64,000 bases of DNA from Octopus sinensis (Eukaryota), in NCBI RefSeq assembly GCF_006345805.1, contig NC_043010.1, forward strand, positions 14,198,001-14,262,000, read 5' to 3'. Made by a program: the position numbers and the translations under genes. A model generated the notes under the pieces. That model was not told the origin of the DNA and did no database searches. It saw only the letters and a list, made by a program, of their open reading frames with translations. Below, piece after piece: positions 18,936-59,469 of this stretch; within the stretch, counting starts at the first letter, position 1; each line of letters begins with the position of its first letter.

Positions 18936-20706
18936 TTGTGTGTGTTTGTGCGTCTGTGTGTCCCCCAACATCACCTGACAACCGATGCTGGTGTGTTTAT
19001 GTCCCCCGTCACTTAGCGGGTTCGGCAAAAGAGACCGATAGAATAAGTCCCGGGGTCGATTTGTTCGATTAAGGCAGTGCTCCAGCATGGCCGCAGTCAC
19101 ATGACTGAAACAAATAAAAGAGTAAAGAGTGCTTTGGTGTGTGTGATGTGCTGGAGGGGAGGGGTAGTAGTATTCAAACCAAATGTAGTTATGCCAAAAT
19201 AGCAAAGAGGGGTAGTGAAAGTCTGATAATTTTAATGAAAAATAGAATACATATTATTATCACTGTCTATTTAGGTAGGAATGGTCGTTGCCAGTACCTA
19301 TTTCTTTATTACCCACAAGGGGATAAACATAGAGGGGACAATCAAGGACAGACATAGGTATTATATCGAGCCCAGTGCGTAACTGGTAGTTAATCTATCG
19401 ACCCCGAAAGGATGAAAGGCAAAGTTGAACTTGGCAGAATTTGAACTCACAACGTAACGACAGACGAAATACCGCTAAGTGTTTCGCCCGACGTGCCAAC
19501 GTTTCTGGCCCCCGTGCCGGTGGCACGTAAAAAGCACCCACTGCGCTCTCAGAGTGGTTGGTGTTAGGAAGGGCATCCAACTGTAGAAACTCTTGCCAGA
19601 TCAAGATTGGAGCCTGGTGCAGCCATCTGGTTCGCCAGCCCTCAGTCAAAATCGTCCAACCCATGCTAGCATGGAAAGCAGACGTTAAACGATGATGATG
19701 ATGTCTTAATGTCTACATTTCCATGCTTATATAGATCATCATCATCATCATCATCGTTTAGCATCCGCTTTCCATGCTAGCATGGGTTGGATGGTTCAAC
19801 TGGGGTCTGGGAAGCCAGAAGGCTGCACCAGGCCCAGTTTGATCTGGCAATGTTTCTACGGCTGGATGCCCTTCCTAACGCCAACCACTCCTTTGAGTGT
19901 AGTGGGTGCTTTTTATGTGCCACCGGCACGGAGGCCAGACGAGTCAAATGAAATTTTCAAGTTTCTTGGCATGAGGTATCAAGACAAGGAAACACACACA
20001 CACACACATGTACATACAAACAAACAAATGCATATATATATATATATATCAGCAGTAGCAAGGTGCTGTGCAGTGGGGCTGGGACCCTAGACAACATAGT
20101 TGGGAAGCAAGCTTTTAATTAAAGCTGAGACTGCTCTCTGTCATTATACTTAACTTCAAAACACAGAACACTGAATAGAGACATAGGGATACCTCAGCTT
20201 TGAATAAATGAATAAACTCTACTACACGAGTGGCTGTGTGGTAAGTAGCTTGCTTACCAACCACATGGTTCCAGGTTCAGTCCCACTACGTGGCACCTTG
20301 GGCAAGTGTCTTCTACTATAGCCTCGGGCCGACCAATGCCTTGTGAGTGGATTTGGCAGAGGGAACTGAAAGAAGCCTGTCGTATATGTATGTGTGTCTG
20401 TGTTTGTCCCTCCACCATCGCTTGACAACCGATGCTCGTGTGTTTAAGTCCCCGTAACCTAGCGGTTCGGCGAAAGAGACCGATAGAATAAGTACTAGGC
20501 CTACAAAGAATAAGTCCTGGGGTCGATTTGCTCGACTAAAAGGCGATGCTCCAGCATGGCCACAGTCAAATGACTGAAACAAGTAGAAGAGTACTCACAT
20601 ACTTCATTTGAAAATTGATAGACAAAGGGGTAGAGAGAGAGAGAGAGAGAGTGAAGGCTTGGGAGTTCGGCAGTTATCGAGAGAATCTCTCTGTTATAAA
20701 GGATAC
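18677..20706 (-). other. RPP30: U12-type (minor spliceosome) GT-AG intron of RPP30
   Basis: 5' site GTATCCTTT (20706-20698), branch site TTCCTTGAC (18703-18695) about 19 nt before the terminal CAG. Phase 2. Confidence 0.9.
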
Positions 20707-20744
20707 AGTACTCGAACATCGTAGGGTCCTCGCAAGTCTAAGGG
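20707..20744 (-). CDS. RPP30: RPP30 exon (38 nt)
   Basis: PLDLRGPYDVRV(L) versus human PLEIRGPYDVANL. tttag acceptor and GTATCCTTT donor. Confidence 0.93.
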
Positions 20745-21906
20745 CTAAAGTAAAAGAAAAGGAAAGTAACAACAAAAATATATACAAGACATTTCAGCAA
20801 AAAAAAACAAAAACTGCTGAAGTTTCTATAAATGAATATACAGCACTTTGGGTCATGGTAGTTGTTTAACCACAGGTTGGATTTGATACAGGAGACCTAT
20901 GATCACAGACCTTGCAGCTTTGATCATTCCATCATCATCATCATCATCATCATTATCATCATCGTTTAACGTCCGCTTTCCATGCTAGCATGGGTTGGAC
21001 GATTTTGACTGAGGGCTGGTGAACCAGATGACTGCACCAGGCTCCAATCTGATCTGGCAGTGTTTCTACAGCTGGATGCCCTTCCTAACGCCAACCACTC
21101 CGAGAGTGTAGTGGGTGCTTTTACGTGCCACCGGCACAAGGGCCAGTTAGGCGGTACTGGCAACAACCTCGCTCAAATCCTTTTACACATGCCACCAGCA
21201 CAGGTGCCAGTAAGGCGACTTTGATAACGATCACGCTCAAATGGTGCCCTTTTACGTGCCACTGGCACGGAAGCCAGTTAGCCGTTTTGTCAATGATCAC
21301 GCTTGTATTGGTGCTCTTTGCATCCTACTAGCATGGATGCCATTCATCAAATTTGATTTTGATTTTCCATCTTGTATTTTCACATGATACATCTACAGAC
21401 TTACATCATCCATTGTTCCTTTCCATTTTTGTAAGGTGGTAGATTATGATTTCAGTGATGAACCGGTGTCCCATTCAAGGGGGAATTTGGGTTAAACTCT
21501 AGCCTTATGATCCCTAGGGTTTGTGACAAACCTGAGACCTAAGAAAAGTATGATTTTGAATGATATTTGGTTGGTATTTTTAGCATATTGAGTAGCCACA
21601 TAAGAGGCTCTTTCGATGGCAACTGTCAGCTATTTGTAACAGTTATAGTGTTGTTGATGATTTCTGATGATATCTATTTCTTTATTGCCCACAAGGGGCT
21701 AAACACAGAGAGGACAAACAGATTAAGTGGATTATATCAACCCCAGTGTGTAACTGGTACTTATTTAATCGACCCCGAAAGGATGAAAGGTAAAGTCGAC
21801 CTCAGTGGAATTTGAACCAGAACGTAACGGCAGACGAAATACGGCTAAGCATTTCGCCCGGCATGCTAACGTTTCTGCTAGCTCGCCGCCTTAAAATACA
21901 AGCCTC

Positions 21907-21978
21907 CTCCCTGGTGGGGAATCGAACCCCGGCCTCCTGCGTGACAGGCAGGGATACTTACCACTGTACTAACGAAGA
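21907..21978 (-). pseudogene. tRNA-Asp(GTC) retrocopy or pseudogene
   Basis: 72-nt TCTTCGTTAGTACAGTGGTAAGTATCCCTGCCTGTCACGCAGGAGGCCGGGGTTCGATTCCCCACCAGGGAG with GTC anticodon and intact A and B boxes. Mismatches in the acceptor stem (C5-A68, T7-C66) and T stem (C49-A65). Confidence 0.85.
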
Positions 21979-23156
21979 ACATTTCTGATGATATCAGAGG
22001 CACATGGCTAAATGGTTAAAAATGTTGGCCTCGCAATCACAAGGTTGTAGGTTCAATTCCCAGATCAGGAGAAATATTTTGTCCTTGAGCAACGTCCTTC
22101 CTTCCTTTCATGTCATTCATTGAAAATAAGTACCAGCTTAGTGTTAACGTTGCCCTCTCTCTCTCATCAGTTATCACATCTTCAATGCTTCACAGAGTTA
22201 AGGGCTGAAAGAACCTAGAGGCCATACATGACTACTTGTGACTACACAAGCAGCTAGAAATACTAGTGAAGCAATGGTACATGCTAACAGGTCGTACTCG
22301 CTGGCAAGTGATGGCTACATATTTGTTTCATGTTGGTGATGACTTTGATTATGATGATGATGAGGATAATTCAGTCGCTGATGGTGATATTCAATATAGT
22401 GAAACATTGACAACACAGGCAACAAAAACTGAGGAAAAAAAACAAGCCTGGTATGGAGATTTAGAATTACAATTGTGTATCTGGGTGTGTGCACATGCAG
22501 ATATATATATACATGGCGCAGGAGTGGCTGTGTGGTAAGTAGCTTGCTTACAAACCACATGGTTCCGGGTTCAGTCCCACTGCGTGGCACCTTGGGCAAG
22601 TATCTTCTACTATAGCCTCGGGCCAACCAAAGCCTTATGAGTGGATTTGGTAGACGGAAACTGAAAGAAGCCCGTTGTATATATGTATATATATATATGT
22701 GAGTATGTATGTTTGTGTGTCTGCGTTTGTCCCCCTAGCATTGCTTGACCACCGATGCTGGTGTGTTTATGTCCCCGTCACTTAGCGGTTCGGCAAAAGA
22801 GACCGGCAGAATAAGTACTGGGCTTACAAAGAATAAGTCCCGGGGTCAAGTTGCTCGATTACAGGCGGTGCTCCAGCATGGCCGCAGTCAAATGATTGAA
22901 ACGAGTAAAAGAGTATATATATATATATATAGAGAGAGAGAGAATTAAGAGATAGAACTTCCATAAAGTAATTCAATTAATAATGAAAGATATTATCTAT
23001 AATAAAATATAAATTTAAATATATTATTATTAACATTTTACTAAAAATTTCTATACTAAATAATACACATTAAAACGACGACACACGTTTCGTGACTATG
23101 TATACAAATCTACAATATCAAAATCGATAATCTCAAAAATTAATATTTCTTTGAAT

Positions 23157-23530: not shown

Positions 23531-23560
23531 ATTCTCACAGCCACTGGTTAAAATGAGATT
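23531..23560 (-). CDS. RPP30: RPP30 microexon (30 nt)
   Basis: NLILTSGCEN versus human NVIISSAAER. actttcag acceptor, gtgagt donor. Phase 0/0. Confidence 0.88.
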
Positions 23561-28591: not shown

Positions 28592-30129
28592 CTGGGTACG
28601 TAAGGTATTTGAGGACATACCTTTTTGGGGTCATTGCTGTATTTTTTGCTAACTCTGTATAATCTTTGTTTTAGAAAATAATAATGGCAGGCCCTCAGCT
28701 TATTCAAGAAACGAAGAGGCATGCTGTTATTGTGGTTATAAAGGCTGAGCATAGCAATTTAGAAATATCTCGATTTTTAAAAGTTGCCAGATCTTTCATC
28801 TACAAAGTTTTTGAGGAGCTAAAGACAGAAGATGGAAATGTATCACCAGTATCAGAGTATAAAAAGCATTCTAAATGCTCTGAAATCATCAGAGCACCTG
28901 AATTTATCCCGAAAGTTCAACAGACTGTTGATTACAATCCCAGAAAGTCCATGAGGTCAATTGCAAAAGATTTCCATATGTCAGAAAGAATAGTCAGAAA
29001 TGTTATCCATGAAGACACCAGATATAAATAATCTTTATATGATGAGGTTAATTTGTCAGGAAGAGCAAAAGAAAATCACTACATCTTATCAAAAAGGCTC
29101 TTAAACAAGCTGAAAAATCCAGCAGAATATTTGATATGGTTTTTCTCAAACAACACTGAACACCTTTTTGATCTCCATGTGTCTAACACACGTGGACATG
29201 CCTACAAAGTCAGAAAACAGCACAGCTCCCATGACTTTCGGAAACATTTTTTCACGCTCAGGGTTGCTGAAGCGTGGAATAAACTGCCTGCATCAGTTGT
29301 TGACTGCCATGACACTGCATCCTTTAAGGCCCTCATGCTTCCCGAAATCCGTCGAAACTACACCTGATTATATATACACTTTAGATGAGTTGTAGTGCAC
29401 CTGAGCACTGTACACAATTATTATTATTATTATATAAGAAAAATTTCAACCAAGATGAAAAAGTTAGCAGAAGAAATGACAGATGGTTATGTGCAGACCC
29501 TTCAGAAGTTCCAAGTGTTATGCGTACAAAATTCCCTGCAACTGTCATGGTTTTAAGGGTTGTCGGCAATGAAGGAGATGTGATGCCTCTTTACTTCTTT
29601 CTACAAGGCCTTAGAGTTAACTCTGCCACCTACATTGAGGTTCTAGAAATAATTGTTAAGCCTTGGATAGACAGTGTATGCAATGGAAGGCCATATGTGT
29701 TTCAGTAAAACTCTGCACTATCACACATGGCTCTAGTAACACAGGAATGGATGGCTGAAAATGTTCATGATCACACAACTCCTAACATTTGGCCTCCTAA
29801 TTCCCCAAATCTCAATCCATTGGACTATTACACATGTGGAGCGTTGTTGAGTGAGAAGTCAATGAACACCTCCATAACACCAAAGATTCTTTGAAAGCTG
29901 CCATAGTCAGAGTAATGACCAAAATGAACCAGGAACATCTGATTCGAGCATGTAGATGATTTAGATCTCATATTTGTTGAAGCTGAAGGTGGCTTTATGG
30001 AATAACATATAGAAAGGAAGGTTTATTTTTATCTTTATAGTATTTTTTGATAAATAAAGTTATCGTCAGTTATTACACATCTACTTTTTTATAAACATAA
30101 ATCTGTCCTTAAATACTTTATGCACCCAG
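28592..30129 (+). mobile_element. Tc1/mariner maT-type (DD37D) transposon, inactive, interrupted by a CR1 tail
   Basis: ~26-bp imperfect TIRs. HTH-type N-terminal ORF at 28684-29031. FQ*NSA...WPPNSPNLNPLDY with 37 residues between the second (mutated to N) and third catalytic positions. Confidence 0.88.
29150..29432 (+). mobile_element. CR1-type LINE 3' end with (TTA)n tail
   Basis: NTRGHAYKVRKQHSSHDFRKHFFTLRVAEAWNKLPASVV motif. Same family at 46490-46590, 60870-61245 and 63703-63895. Confidence 0.88.
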
Positions 30130-47234: not shown

Positions 47235-48952
47235 GGTGCCCAAAAGCAGGTTTACAGTTATTCAACTCTTTTGCATTCATATATTAACAGTTTGGATCTT
47301 AATTATAAAAAAAAAAACATGAAACCAATATTCTTACATTCTCTTCACAGAAAAGGATGTATCGTAAAGTCTGATCGTCCTCTTTGGAGCCAGAAAATAC
47401 TTCAGCTTTCAACAAATTATCTCTAAAAATCTCATTCATCACCCATAATTGGAACACTGCCCCCACATCTAGGACAGTGCAGCACTACAATACACAGAGA
47501 CAGCATCAAAACAAAGAGCCCTCTGGCCAATGACGTGAGGTCACTTGCCCAACACACTGCTACTTCAAGTCCAGTTTCCTCCCTATGCGATTTCTTCTAT
47601 CGCTACTCCTCAAAGCCGGTTACTAGAGTCACCTCCCTTTATGTCCTCTCGACTCGCTTGTCTCCCTTCTTGTAACCCACACTGTATCCAACGACACCCC
47701 ATTCCAGGCACTGTGTTAACCACTACACTAAGTCCCTTTTTCCCCCAGGACATATCAATCTGCCTGAGTTCAGTCCTTACTTGTACTTTTTTTTTTTTTA
47801 AAGTTTATCTGGCAACCATCAACTTGTTTCATTAGCTTGGAATGAGATCACTGTGCGTGGCTGACAATTTGACACGGTTGACTGGGCATTCAACCTGTTT
47901 CAGTGACTGCACGTTTTGGCACAGGAGGCAAACACACACACACGTATGTGTGCACAGAAATATACACATACAGATAGTGAGAGAGAGAGAGAAACATTAT
48001 GCATACATGGCCGTTGCCAGCCCTGCCCCGACTGGCCTCCGCGCCGGTGGCACGTAAAAGCACCATCCGTTCGTGGCCGTTTGCCAGCTCCATCTGGCTC
48101 CTGTGCGGGTGGCACATAAAAAGCACCCACTACACTCATGGAGTGGTTGGCGTTAGGAAGGGCATCCAGCCGTAGAAACACTGCCAGATCAGACTGGGCC
48201 TGATGCAGCCTTCTGGCTTCACAGACCCCAGTTGAACCGTTCAACCCATGCTAGCAGGGAAAGCGGAGGCTAAATGATGATGATGATGATATACATGCAG
48301 ATGTTGAAGTGTAGTTAAGCTTACTTCCCAACTACAGGTTCTTGGTTCAATCCCACTGCGTGGTACCTTGGACAAGTGTTTTCTACTACAGCCCTAACCT
48401 TGTGAGTAGATTTCGTAAATCATCATCGTTTAACGTCCGCTTTCCATGCTGGCATGGGTTGGACGATTTGAGTGAGGACTGGCAAACCAGATGGCTGCAC
48501 CAGGCTCCAATCTGATGGAAACTGAAAGAAGCCTGGTGCGTGTGTGTGTTTGTCCCCCTCACTGCTTGACTGCCAATGTTGATTTGTTTATGTCCCCCTA
48601 ACTTAACAGCTGGGAAAAAGGAGACCAATAGAATAAGTATCAGAATTAAAAGAATAAGTACAGGGAGGTCAATTTGTTTGACTAAACCCTTCAGGTTGGT
48701 ACCCCCAGCGTGACAACAGTCCAATGACTGAAACTAGTGCAAGATAAATACAAACATAAGATTTTCACAAAGAGAGAGGGGGGGGTGAGAAATTTGGTTT
48801 CAAATTTTGGCACAAGGCCAGCAAGTTTGGAGGAGTGGATAAGTTGATTCCATTGACCCTGGTCAGTGCTCAAACTGGTATGTATTCCATCGACCCCAAG
48901 AGGGAAGAAAGGCAAAGTCAACCATGAGGGGATTTGAACTCAGAACATAAAT

Positions 48953-49552
48953 ATTTCTTTATTGCCCACAAGGGGCTAAACACAGAGGGGACAAACAAGG
49001 ACAGACAAAGGGATTAAGTCGATTACATCGACCCCAGTGCATAACTGGTACTTTATTTATCGACCCTGAAAGGATGAAAGGCAAAGTCGACCTCGGCAGA
49101 ATTTGAACTCAGAACGTAGCGGCAGACGAAATACCTATTTCTTTATTACCCACAAGGGGCTAAACATAGAGAGGACAAACAAAGACAGACAAAGGGATTA
49201 AGTCGATTACATCGACCCCAGTGCATAACTGGTACTTTATTTATCGACCCTGAAAGGATGAAAGGCAAAGTCGACCTCGGCAGAATTTGAACTCAGAACA
49301 TAGCGGCAGACGAAATACCTATTTCTTTATTACCCACAAGGGGCTAAACATAGAGAGGACAAACAAGGACAGACAAAGGGATTAAGTCGATTATATCGAC
49401 CCCAGTACGAAACTGGTAATTTATTTATCGACCCCGAAAGGATGAAAGGCAAAGTCAACCCTGGCGGAATTTGAACTCAGAACGTAACGACAGACGAAAT
49501 ACGGCTACGCATTTCGCCCGGTCTGCTAACGTTTCTGCCAGCTCGCCGCCTT
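48953..49552 (-). mobile_element. SINE B head-to-tail trimer (184-bp period) inside an older SINE B
   Basis: Units start at 48953, 49137 and 49321. An 18-bp direct repeat TTGAACTCAGAACATAAA lies at 48934 and 49551. Confidence 0.85.
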
Positions 49553-50159
49553 GAACTCAGAACATAAAGACAGATGAAATGCCGCTAAGCATTTTGCCCA
49601 GTGTGCTTACCATTCTGCCAGCTTGCCACCGCAATACTGCAAAATATATTAGCAACAGTACAACAACAACAACAACAAAATTAATAATTGCTTCTAACAT
49701 AGAAATAAGGCTTAAAAGTTGGGGAAGGTTTGACAGATACTTCAACCCTGGAAGGAGGAATGGCAAAGTTGATCTTAGCAGGAGCTGAAATTGGAACCTA
49801 AATTGCCAGAACATATGCCACAAGGCATTTTGTCTGATACTCTAGTGATTCTGCCAAATCACCATCCTAGTGACAACAGTAGGAACAATGACGAGAATAC
49901 TAACAACAACAACGTTATCAATCCTCATCATCATCATCGTTGCCATCATCATTCATTTTAACATCTTCTTTTCCATGGTTGTATGGCTTGATTGGAGTTT
50001 ATTGAGGCCAATTTTCTATGGCGGGGCACCTTTCCTGTTGCCAACAATCACCTGTTTCTAAGAGAGATAATATTTCCCTATGGACAGACATGCAGACATA
50101 TTTATGCAGAATATTGGAAATAACTAATACAGCTTGTAAGACAGTGACACACACTAGTA

Positions 50160-56712: not shown

Positions 56713-59469
56713 CTGTAAGAACACAAGAACAACGAAGAGAATGGTTAATGAAATTGCAACATGGCAGCACTGAAGATGAAGAAGAGGTACGTGAAGCAAT
56801 GCAAATGGCACACAGACAGGTCAAACTAACTAACGCAAAAGACCTTCATTTTATCATCACTATCATCATCATCATCATCATCAACATTTAACGTCCGTTC
56901 TCCATGCTAGCATGGGTTGGACGGTTCGACCGGGGATCTGGGAAGCCAGAAGGCTGCACCAGGCTCCGGTCTTATCTGGCAATGTTTCTACAGCTGGATG
57001 CCCTTCCTAACGCCAACCACTCCGTGAGTGTAGTGGGTGCTTTTTACGTGCCACCTGCACTGGTGCCAGGCGAGGCTGGCATCGGCCACGGTCGGATTGG
57101 TGCATTTTACGTGCCACCTGCACGGAAGCCAGTCGAGGTGGCACTGGCTTCGGCCACGATTCGGATGGTGCTTTTTACGTACCACCGACACGGATTACTT
57201 AACTCCAATGCAGCTCTGATTGATTAGATTGTAACAAGATGAGAGTCTCAGGAACACTTGAGGGGTGTTTGGTCTTATCTTGTCACATACAAGTCGAAGA
57301 AAAGGAACCAAAAATCCGCCTGTCTTCAATAACAATAAAGAGTACTTTATTCTTCGGGTTCACAGGTAAAATATATACATATATATTTCTTAAGGGCGAA
57401 CCGGCAGCCAAGTCCACAGGACTGTACACAAATGTTCACTCAGGCGAGCCAAGAAGATACGGTCTCCGCTCCTATTTCTTTACTACCCACAAGGGGCTAA
57501 ACACAGAGAGGACAAACAAGGACAGACAAACGGATTAAGTCAATTATATCAACCCCAGTACTTATTTAATAGACCCCGAAAGGATGAAAGGCAAAGTCGA
57601 CCGCGGCAGAATTTGAACTCAGAACATAACGGCAGACGAAATACCGCTAAGCATTTCGCCCGGCATGCTAACGTTTGTGCCACCTCTCCGCCAAGAAGAT
57701 ACGATCTCCGCTCCTGCTTCGAAGAGAGCTTCTCTATGCGTAGGGTTTTCCCTGAGAGAAGTTTTAGTCACATCCGTTCGTTAGGGCTGCTCTCCCAAAA
57801 AAGGACAGATTTAGCGGAGACGCTTTCAGGTTGCAGTTCCTGCGTATGCACATGAGGGAACTTCTGGCGGTCTACCAGAAGCAATCCAATTCTGCGCATG
57901 CACGCTGAAACTTCCACAACAGCGTCACTACAAGATCTATAATCAAACATGTTCCAATCATAACTATTCCATTCATTTGTGAGATATTCTTGCCTTAACT
58001 CCACTACCCAAAGTTTCTTATTAAATGGATAGGATGTGCTCTGAGAGAAATGTGGCTGCTGTTTCTAGCTTGTCAAGCAATCCCCTAGAGGATTCTTCAG
58101 TGGCTCTTGTCATAGTGTCAAGTGTATTTTGTTAGTTGACTTCCATAGTTAGTGGGGCTATGATATGAAGCTAGCAATCTCAACATAGCTGAACATATAT
58201 TAACCCACCTCATCAAAGGAGAGCAAACTTTACTCAGTTTGTGGATAAAGATTTAGCTGTTATTTTCAACAGATCAAGTGATGACATAAAAGCCAATCCC
58301 TTGACCATGTGGTTGCTACCCCAAGAACAGCAGACCAAGTAACCACACATAATACCCATTTCTGGATTATACGGGCCTCTACTTCAATGACAACATGGAT
58401 GTTGTTACAGAAATTTAGCAGTTAGGTGTAGGAGTGGCTGTGTGGTAAGTAGCTTGCTTACCGACCACATGGTTCAGGGTTCAGTCCCACCGCGTAGCAC
58501 CTTGGGCAAGTGTCTTCTACTATAGCCTCGGGCCGACCAAAGCCTTGTGAGTGGATTTGGTAGACGGAAACTCAAAAAAGCCCGTTGTATAGATGTATAT
58601 ATATATGTATGTGTGTGTGTGTTTGTGTATCTGTGTTTGTCCTCCCAACATTGCTTGACAATCGCTTGGCAACGCCCGGTCATAGTGCTAGTAGGAAATA
58701 TTCTGCTCAATACTACAGATTTGTTTGTCACTTGCTTGACCATAACTACTTGAGCATGTCCCTTAGTGGCTAACAATATGTGCATCTCTGATCATGAGCA
58801 GGAGGAGTGGGGGAGTATCAGAGCCATGTGTTGAGAGGGATTCTTTGGGGTTTGAATAAATGTAACAAATGCAAATTTTGAAGGAAATAGTAACCATTTT
58901 CCCATACGCTCTCAGGGTAAGCAAATAGGAAATAACACTTGCTACCCCAAAAACAAAAATCGTGTTACACAGTGTTATCAATTAACTTTGAAAGTAATCA
59001 AAAATTTAAAGAGATTAAGTTTATTAACCCTTTCGTTACCAACCCGGCTGAAACCGGCTCTGGTTCTGTAGTACAAATGTCTTGTTTTCATAAGTTCTGA
59101 ATTAAAATCTTCCACCAAACCTTAGTCACAATTTATGTTCCGAACACTAGCTTAATGATAACTAAGTTATTTTACTAAATTCTCTATTATATTTAAGATT
59201 AAATGAAAGAAACACAGAGCATCTCAACAGAAATACGGTAACAAAAGGGTTAATTAACTGACTTTTTTCCTATTAATCTGGTATGTGGAACACATCAAAA
59301 GGTTCTTAAATAAAATTGCAATGGAAGGTTTCAATTTAAATATGATTAGATTAAAACAGGGCTTTTAGTACAAAAAAAAATCGAAAATGGGGTAGGGGTC
59401 TTCAAACAGGTTGGTATTAAATGGGTTAACATACTCTCACAACAAAAAACAGGTAAAAAAATTACTCAC

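Follow-up and report, generated by a model that had tools for sequence, protein, structure and literature searches.

How did a tRNA-Asp copy and a SINE come to lie head to tail between one pair of direct repeats within a protein-coding gene of Octopus sinensis? In the stretch of O. sinensis DNA that was analysed (64 kb in total, and referred to here as the window), an intron of RPP30 was found to carry a single insert in which a pre-tRNA-Asp copy is joined end to end with a full-length SINE. The parts of this composite, together with the features that border it, are as follows.

23531..23560, minus strand: RPP30 mini-exon NLILTSGCEN, the upstream boundary of the intron (exact peptide match to O. 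sinensis RPP30, P0238)
21996..22200, plus strand: older, unrelated tRNA-like SINE outside the composite (found once in the window)
21981..21995, minus strand: upstream copy of the 15-bp target-site duplication (TSD), GATATCATCAGAAAT (read directly; intact in O. vulgaris too)
21979..21980, minus strand: GT between the TSD and tRNA position 1 (read directly; identical in O. vulgaris)
21907..21978, minus strand: 72-nt tRNA-Asp(GTC)-derived sequence, no CCA (ARAGORN, Rfam)
21893..21906, minus strand: 3' trailer GAGGCTTGTATTTT (read directly; identical in O. vulgaris)
21675..21892, minus strand: full-length SINE B copy, tRNA-headed and with a conserved core (comparison with sibling copies)
21660..21674, minus strand: downstream copy of the 15-bp TSD (read directly)
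~20706..20744, minus strand: RPP30 mini-exon PLDLRGPYDVRVL/PLDLRGPYDVRV, the downstream boundary of the intron (exact peptide match)

Read along the minus strand, the order is GATATCATCAGAAAT, GT, tRNA-Asp(GTC), the trailer GAGGCTTGTATTTT, a 218-nt SINE and again GATATCATCAGAAAT; one perfect 15-bp TSD thus encloses two unrelated RNA-derived parts in the same orientation. When the window was searched with up to two mismatches tolerated, ATTTCTGATGATATC occurred exactly twice, at 21660-21674 and 21981-21995, and shuffled sequence gave a mean of 0.26 matches to this 15-mer. The copies are placed exactly at the SINE 3' end and 2 nt ahead of the tRNA 5' end, and the chance of 15/15 identity at one fixed pair of positions is ~1e-9. 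The original prediction, made from the letters alone, had described this perfect repeat and the order of 2 nt, tRNA, trailer and SINE, and it was right to the base. The trailer that it had described as ending in a T4 run and lacking CCA was likewise read directly from the minus strand. This run (21893-21896) is the sole T4 of the whole composite, is of the Pol III terminator type, and is intact in both O. sinensis and O. vulgaris. Because the composite structure is carried by two independent assemblies, an assembly artefact was rejected.

The tRNA part was examined with ARAGORN, which called a tRNA at 21907-21979 (i.e., with one additional 5' T), and with Rfam RF00005, which gave 44.8 bits at 21908-21978 in O. 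sinensis and 37.1 bits in O. vulgaris. The A and B boxes are legible in this segment. It is the sole tRNA of the window, in which the tRNA plus trailer had no other match. The trailer with its T4 run, the missing CCA and the 2 extra 5' nucleotides fit an unprocessed Pol III precursor, and on these grounds the claim that an unprocessed pre-tRNA was copied is supported. The GT dinucleotide itself is either the remnant of a 2-nt 5' leader or a pair of bases added by the reverse transcriptase.

The tRNA part is a decaying pseudogene. Three stem pairs are mismatched in O. sinensis, and 3-4 non-standard pairs are found across O. sinensis and O. vulgaris. Between the two species, 3 of 88 positions in the tRNA segment differ, compared with a neutral rate of 2.6%. 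At all three of these positions O. vulgaris keeps the base of what we take to be the canonical metazoan tRNA-Asp, and six more departures from that presumed canonical sequence are common to both species; three of the six are G-to-A changes at CpG, and it is these that give rise to the stem mismatches. Given that these six common differences exceed the private divergence of the SINE, the tRNA part may have come from a variant tRNA-Asp gene. A functional tRNA-Asp gene was also considered and was rejected on the basis of the low covariance-model scores (44.8 and 37.1 bits), the 3-4 non-standard stem pairs, the absence of the tRNA from O. bimaculoides and Argonauta, and the lack of visible constraint (3/88 vs 2.6%). 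Between O. sinensis and O. vulgaris the full composite has diverged by 1.5% and the intron by 2.6%, a pace for the composite that is indistinguishable from neutral. What remains in the intron today is a pseudogene that decays neutrally and shows no sign of function.

The SINE part was characterised by comparison with its siblings. When the SINE B copies of the window (about a dozen) were aligned with their flanks, they proved to have a common 5' end, AAGGCGGCGAGC, and a common 3' end, AAAGAAATA; the SINE of the composite starts with AAGGCGGCGAGC and ends with AAAGAAATA, so that both of its ends are complete relative to the siblings. It also has the core, the 3' tail, the TSD flanks and the restriction to the O. 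vulgaris/O. sinensis lineage that mark the SINE B family, whose consensus lacks both a poly(A) tail and an internal T4 run. Compared with the window consensus it is 6.9% diverged, and about 10 of its 16 differences are common to standalone copies. Its private changes, seen in no other copy compared, comprise five substitutions (A at position 14 is among the private variants) and a 14-bp internal deletion; a 1-nt deletion is present as well. The description of the element as a complete SINE B therefore stood for its two termini, which are intact, but not for its interior, where the private 14-bp deletion and the 1-nt deletion lie. The SINE of the composite is an ordinary member of a subfamily whose normal form has no tRNA.

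The junction between the two parts is exact. Five independent full-length SINE B copies begin with AAGG (AAGGCGGC) regardless of the sequence upstream of them, and at the junction TTTT/AAGG (AAGGCGGC) the last T of the T4 run adjoins base 1 of the SINE with zero filler. Since AAGGCGGC is the 5' end of five copies, the junction unites two natural RNA ends exactly.

RPP30 was identified as the host gene from the translations of the exons, which scored 85 bits against Pfam PF01876 (RNase_P_p30), and from the exact matches of the flanking mini-exons; the location that had been proposed for the insert was thereby confirmed. The RPP30 proteins of O. vulgaris, O. sinensis, O. bimaculoides and Argonauta hians were collected by an exhaustive HMMER scan and a follow-up search, and the window was 100% identical to the O. 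sinensis RPP30 locus (L124). The exons are on the minus strand; the insert, in sense orientation, occupies part of a 2.8-kb intron. A functional tie of the insert to RPP30 or RNase P was considered and rejected, the insert being lineage-specific and neutral, and the intron full of other SINEs. Its location in RPP30 is a coincidence.

Several other features of this intron and gene were recorded. The composite integrated ~3 bp from the 5' end of the older, opposite-strand SINE at 21996-22200, which is also present at the orthologous site of O. bimaculoides; insertion beside this SINE may reflect a local target preference or plain high SINE density. At ~20934-21364 the same intron carries a second lineage-specific insertion of ~430 bp, derived from another multi-copy repeat; O. 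bimaculoides lacks this insertion, and the flanks overlap there by ~7 bp. RPP30 as annotated measures ~68.5 kb in both O. sinensis and O. vulgaris; the O. bimaculoides gene measures 31.4 kb and that of Argonauta hians 16.8 kb, and the doubling of the gene in the vulgaris/sinensis lineage accompanies 22-33 SINE B matches, compared with none in O. bimaculoides.

Orthologous sites were then compared in the other octopods. In O. vulgaris (locus L123), the whole composite is present with both 15-mers, and 5 of 336 aligned positions differ from O. sinensis. In O. bimaculoides (L125, ~29140-29175), the tRNA and the SINE are both missing, and the site reads ...GCTTCT GATATCATCA ACAACACTATAAC..., in which GATATCATCA is a single partial copy of the TSD. 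The search for an empty site in related species, which the original prediction had put forward as a check, thus found O. vulgaris filled and O. bimaculoides without both parts and with only a partial 15-mer. Neither a tRNA-only nor a SINE-only state was seen at the orthologous sites of O. vulgaris and O. bimaculoides; an ortholog that had kept the tRNA without the SINE was accordingly rejected, as O. bimaculoides has neither part and O. vulgaris has all of them. No tRNA was found in the RPP30 locus of Argonauta, whose intron is too diverged to align or to polarise the 10-bp indel described below. With a filled site in O. vulgaris, an empty site in O. bimaculoides and no intermediate, comparison of these sequences supports entry of the composite later than the bimaculoides split but earlier than the split of sinensis from vulgaris. 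Intron substitution divergence, measured over local HSPs, was 2.6% between O. sinensis and O. vulgaris and ~6.8% between O. sinensis and O. bimaculoides. The vulgaris-bimaculoides split has been placed at 13-33 My (PMC13282606).

The empty site of O. bimaculoides is shorter than expected. The reconstructed 25-bp target is GATATCATCAGAAATCATCAACAAC, of which O. bimaculoides is without 10 bp, GAAATCATCA, and this segment sits between two ATCATCA repeats. We favour slippage between the ATCATCA repeats within the empty site as the origin of this 10-bp shortfall, rather than the deletion of an old insert, because SINE B copies are missing throughout the O. bimaculoides gene: every scorable SINE B copy of the gene is missing there, and BLAST matches to SINE B numbered 33 in the O. 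sinensis locus, 22 in O. vulgaris and 0 in O. bimaculoides. These counts agree with a SINE/LINE burst at ~18 My reported for O. vulgaris (PMC13282606).

The behaviour of the SINE B family bears on how such an insert could form. Sibling SINE B copies show clean TSDs of ~6-25 bp and precise single-copy empty sites; a shared integration machinery is indicated, and the pattern is as expected of LINE-mediated target-primed reverse transcription. No partner LINE of SINE B was found, and the Argonauta intron likewise yielded no LINE. SINE B dimers of the form [1-233][50-233] occur at independent loci with an identical junction (AAATA/GGTATTTCG) and with TSDs around the whole unit, which indicates that composite cDNAs arise and move as units in this family. 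Tandem arrays were also observed, in which a 183-184-bp sub-unit (positions 50-233) follows one full unit. An array at window positions 48840-49630 has one unit more than its O. vulgaris orthologue, and an array at L124 2745-4076 has 1+6 units in O. sinensis where O. vulgaris (L123 2728-2959) has a single unit. Given these loci and arrays, a dimeric form of SINE B retrotransposes and afterwards expands in a satellite-like manner. The SINE B copy at window positions 57473-57692 has a 25-bp TSD, and O. vulgaris has a precise empty site; judged by this comparison, the copy is an O. sinensis-specific insertion and SINE B has been active very recently. This copy is 8% diverged from the window consensus despite its recency, so that divergence from the consensus tracks subfamily and not age.

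A further observation concerns the core of the element. SINE B positions 92-136 (e.g., 21757-21801) contain a 45-nt core (…CCTTTCATCCTTTCGGGGTCGATAAAT…) that is also found in a different tRNA-headed element, which was present in at least 120 JGI metagenome contigs of ~46% GC, evidently from another animal host. The neighbouring SINE at 21996-22200 carries a looser version of the same core. The 45-nt core is a cross-taxon SINE core domain, possibly of the Deu/Nin-DC type. A 21-nt match to the core in a Christensenellales MAG (JBMNLD010000001.1, L121 3002-3022) was surrounded by unrelated bacterial sequence, and contamination or transfer was rejected; the match is consistent with chance, ~0.3 such matches being expected in 596 Gb.

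Taken together, the single TSD and the filled and empty orthologous sites bear out the claim that the composite was retrotransposed as one unit, and we regard it as very probable that it entered by a single-unit retro-insertion of a cDNA that held an untrimmed pre-tRNA and a full-length SINE. How that cDNA was made is a separate matter. We think it probable, with clearly less confidence, that a LINE-mediated template switch after the bimaculoides split led from the 5' end of the SINE RNA to the 3' oligo-U of a nascent pre-tRNA. We would place a single target-primed reverse transcription event, carried out by a LINE reverse transcriptase, in the ancestor shared by O. sinensis and O. vulgaris. 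Synthesis would have begun on the 3' tail of an ordinary, full-length SINE B RNA and would have continued to the first nucleotide of that RNA. There the enzyme would have switched template. The second template would have been a nascent pre-tRNA-Asp(GTC) with an untrimmed 3' trailer, no CCA and a leader of at most 2 nt; the enzyme would have entered it at its 3' oligo-U and copied it to its 5' end. Integration of the chimeric cDNA would have produced the 15-bp TSD. Directly observed are the anatomy of the insert, its exact junction, its one TSD, the occupied and empty orthologous sites and the decay at a neutral pace. From these observations we infer that templates were switched and which reverse transcriptase was at work. 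In the published model, chimeric retrocopies and new SINE heads arise when synthesis jumps from SINE or LINE RNA to a small RNA, tRNA-Asp among them (PMC5729268, PMC4494074, PMC4758252, PMC4476161). A template switch is preferred because it alone accounts for the exact end-to-end junction, which under read-through transcription requires a positional coincidence.

Such read-through (5' transduction) is the alternative that survives best, although we consider it unlikely. It supposes that a SINE B had inserted right after the T4 of a tRNA-Asp gene and that a Pol III co-transcript of the two was retrotransposed by way of the SINE 3' tail. The observed order of leader, tRNA, trailer and SINE within one TSD is just what it predicts. 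T4 is a minimal, leaky Pol III terminator, and SINE B, having no T4 of its own, gives transcripts that normally run into flanking DNA. The five private substitutions and the private deletion could have come from a non-master source copy, yet these variants were seen in no other copy, and the earlier SINE would have had to insert in sense orientation at the exact base after the T-run.

We assign little probability to an existing dimeric tRNA-Asp/SINE B family, propagating as a unit, of which the locus would be just one copy. Dimeric SINE B units do move as units in the O. sinensis genome, and tRNA-containing dimeric SINEs are known elsewhere (PMC4758252). Against this, neither the rest of the window nor ~195 kb of octopod loci, where SINE B itself gave 22-33 matches per 70 kb, yielded a second tRNA or tRNA-trailer match. 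Moreover, the T4 between the parts would halt most transcripts from the tRNA promoter, and transcripts from the SINE promoter would yield plain SINE B. Scans for the composite in viral contigs gave 0 matches, as did an exact-pattern scan of metagenome contigs; the latter is uninformative on octopus, given that the contigs with the control core (at least 120) hold an element of another host that matches over the 45-nt core only.

Two separate events (a SINE B insertion with its TSD, followed by capture of a pre-tRNA cDNA, e.g., during break repair), or an insert older than the split that was later deleted in O. bimaculoides through ATCATCA microhomology, are very improbable: a deletion between the first and third ATCATCA would yield exactly the O. 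bimaculoides sequence, 10 bp short, but the tRNA segment lacks a separate TSD and lies exactly between the TSD and SINE base 1, the intermediate state was seen in no species, SINE B is wholly missing from the O. bimaculoides locus, and slippage between repeats 10 bp apart is simpler.

With the template switch retained as the preferred reading, the broader suggestion that the composite offers a possible route to new composite SINEs can be judged. It is plausible in general; at this locus the internal T4 terminator speaks against the composite giving rise to a SINE family, a second copy was not seen, and the tRNA part is in decay. A stronger form, in which the insert would be a first-generation, "frozen" intermediate of SINE head acquisition, and in which a cephalopod LINE reverse transcriptase would switch onto nascent nuclear pre-tRNAs and seed dimeric SINE families, strikes us as improbable. 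If it were true, such events, possibly including the composite itself once its T4 was lost, would seed dimeric SINE families in the O. vulgaris/O. sinensis lineage.

The locus has no evident function and no tie to RPP30 biology. The standard account, mostly inferred, of how SINEs gain or swap tRNA heads is a template switch onto a small Pol III RNA. The octopus chimera is a single, unamplified copy that keeps its trailer, terminator, both RNA termini and TSD, and it can be set beside a dated empty site in a sister species; it thereby gives direct structural evidence of the head-acquisition step, from outside mammals and the L1/poly(A) system. The composite further implies that the reverse transcriptase encountered an unprocessed nuclear pre-tRNA.

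Chimeric retrocopies of small Pol III RNAs with retroelements, as well as pre-tRNA retropseudogenes, are already established in mammals. The closest parallel is given by the U6/L1 chimeras (Buzdin et al. 2002/2003; PMC4476161), which join a complete 5' Pol III RNA with oligo-U to a 3' retroelement in the same orientation, with a single TSD around both parts and an empty orthologous site. They differ from the octopus composite in both partners: here the 5' part is a pre-tRNA and not U6, and the 3' part is a full-length, non-polyadenylated SINE and not a 5'-truncated L1. The host here is a cephalopod, and the LINE is probably not L1. In mammalian tRNA/LINE-1 chimeras (bioRxiv 10.1101/2025.02.02.635956), a tRNA and a retroelement were also inserted together, with TSDs of 9-19 bp; those chimeras mostly contain antisense tRNA halves and have been attributed to twin priming, whereas the octopus insert carries a sense, full precursor with its trailer, joined end to end. 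"Tailless" pre-tRNA retropseudogenes, which are L1-mediated (Schmitz et al. 2004, as cited in PMC4476161), are likewise retrocopies of unprocessed pre-tRNA and imply nuclear recruitment, but each stands alone; the octopus pre-tRNA is attached to a SINE, and it is the SINE that provides the 3' end for recognition.

Families of SINEs provide the remaining comparisons. For PittSINE (PMC5729268), which involves tRNA-Asp, and for the 5' additions of SINEU (PMC4494074), a switch from SINE RNA to a small RNA during target-primed reverse transcription has been proposed to give a TSD-flanked chimera, as we propose here. In those cases the event was inferred backwards from amplified families whose head had been replaced or extended, whereas the octopus locus is a single unamplified copy in which the two heads, the terminator and the trailer all survive. 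Dimeric and complex tRNA-derived SINEs such as CYN, DAS and Twin (PMC4758252) resemble the composite in having two tRNA-related Pol III modules in tandem as one retroposed unit; unlike them, since a family needs many copies, it is one known locus and has an internal T4. What is distinct here is the combination of a sense, full-length precursor with a full-length, non-poly(A) SINE, in a cephalopod, together with a comparative empty site.
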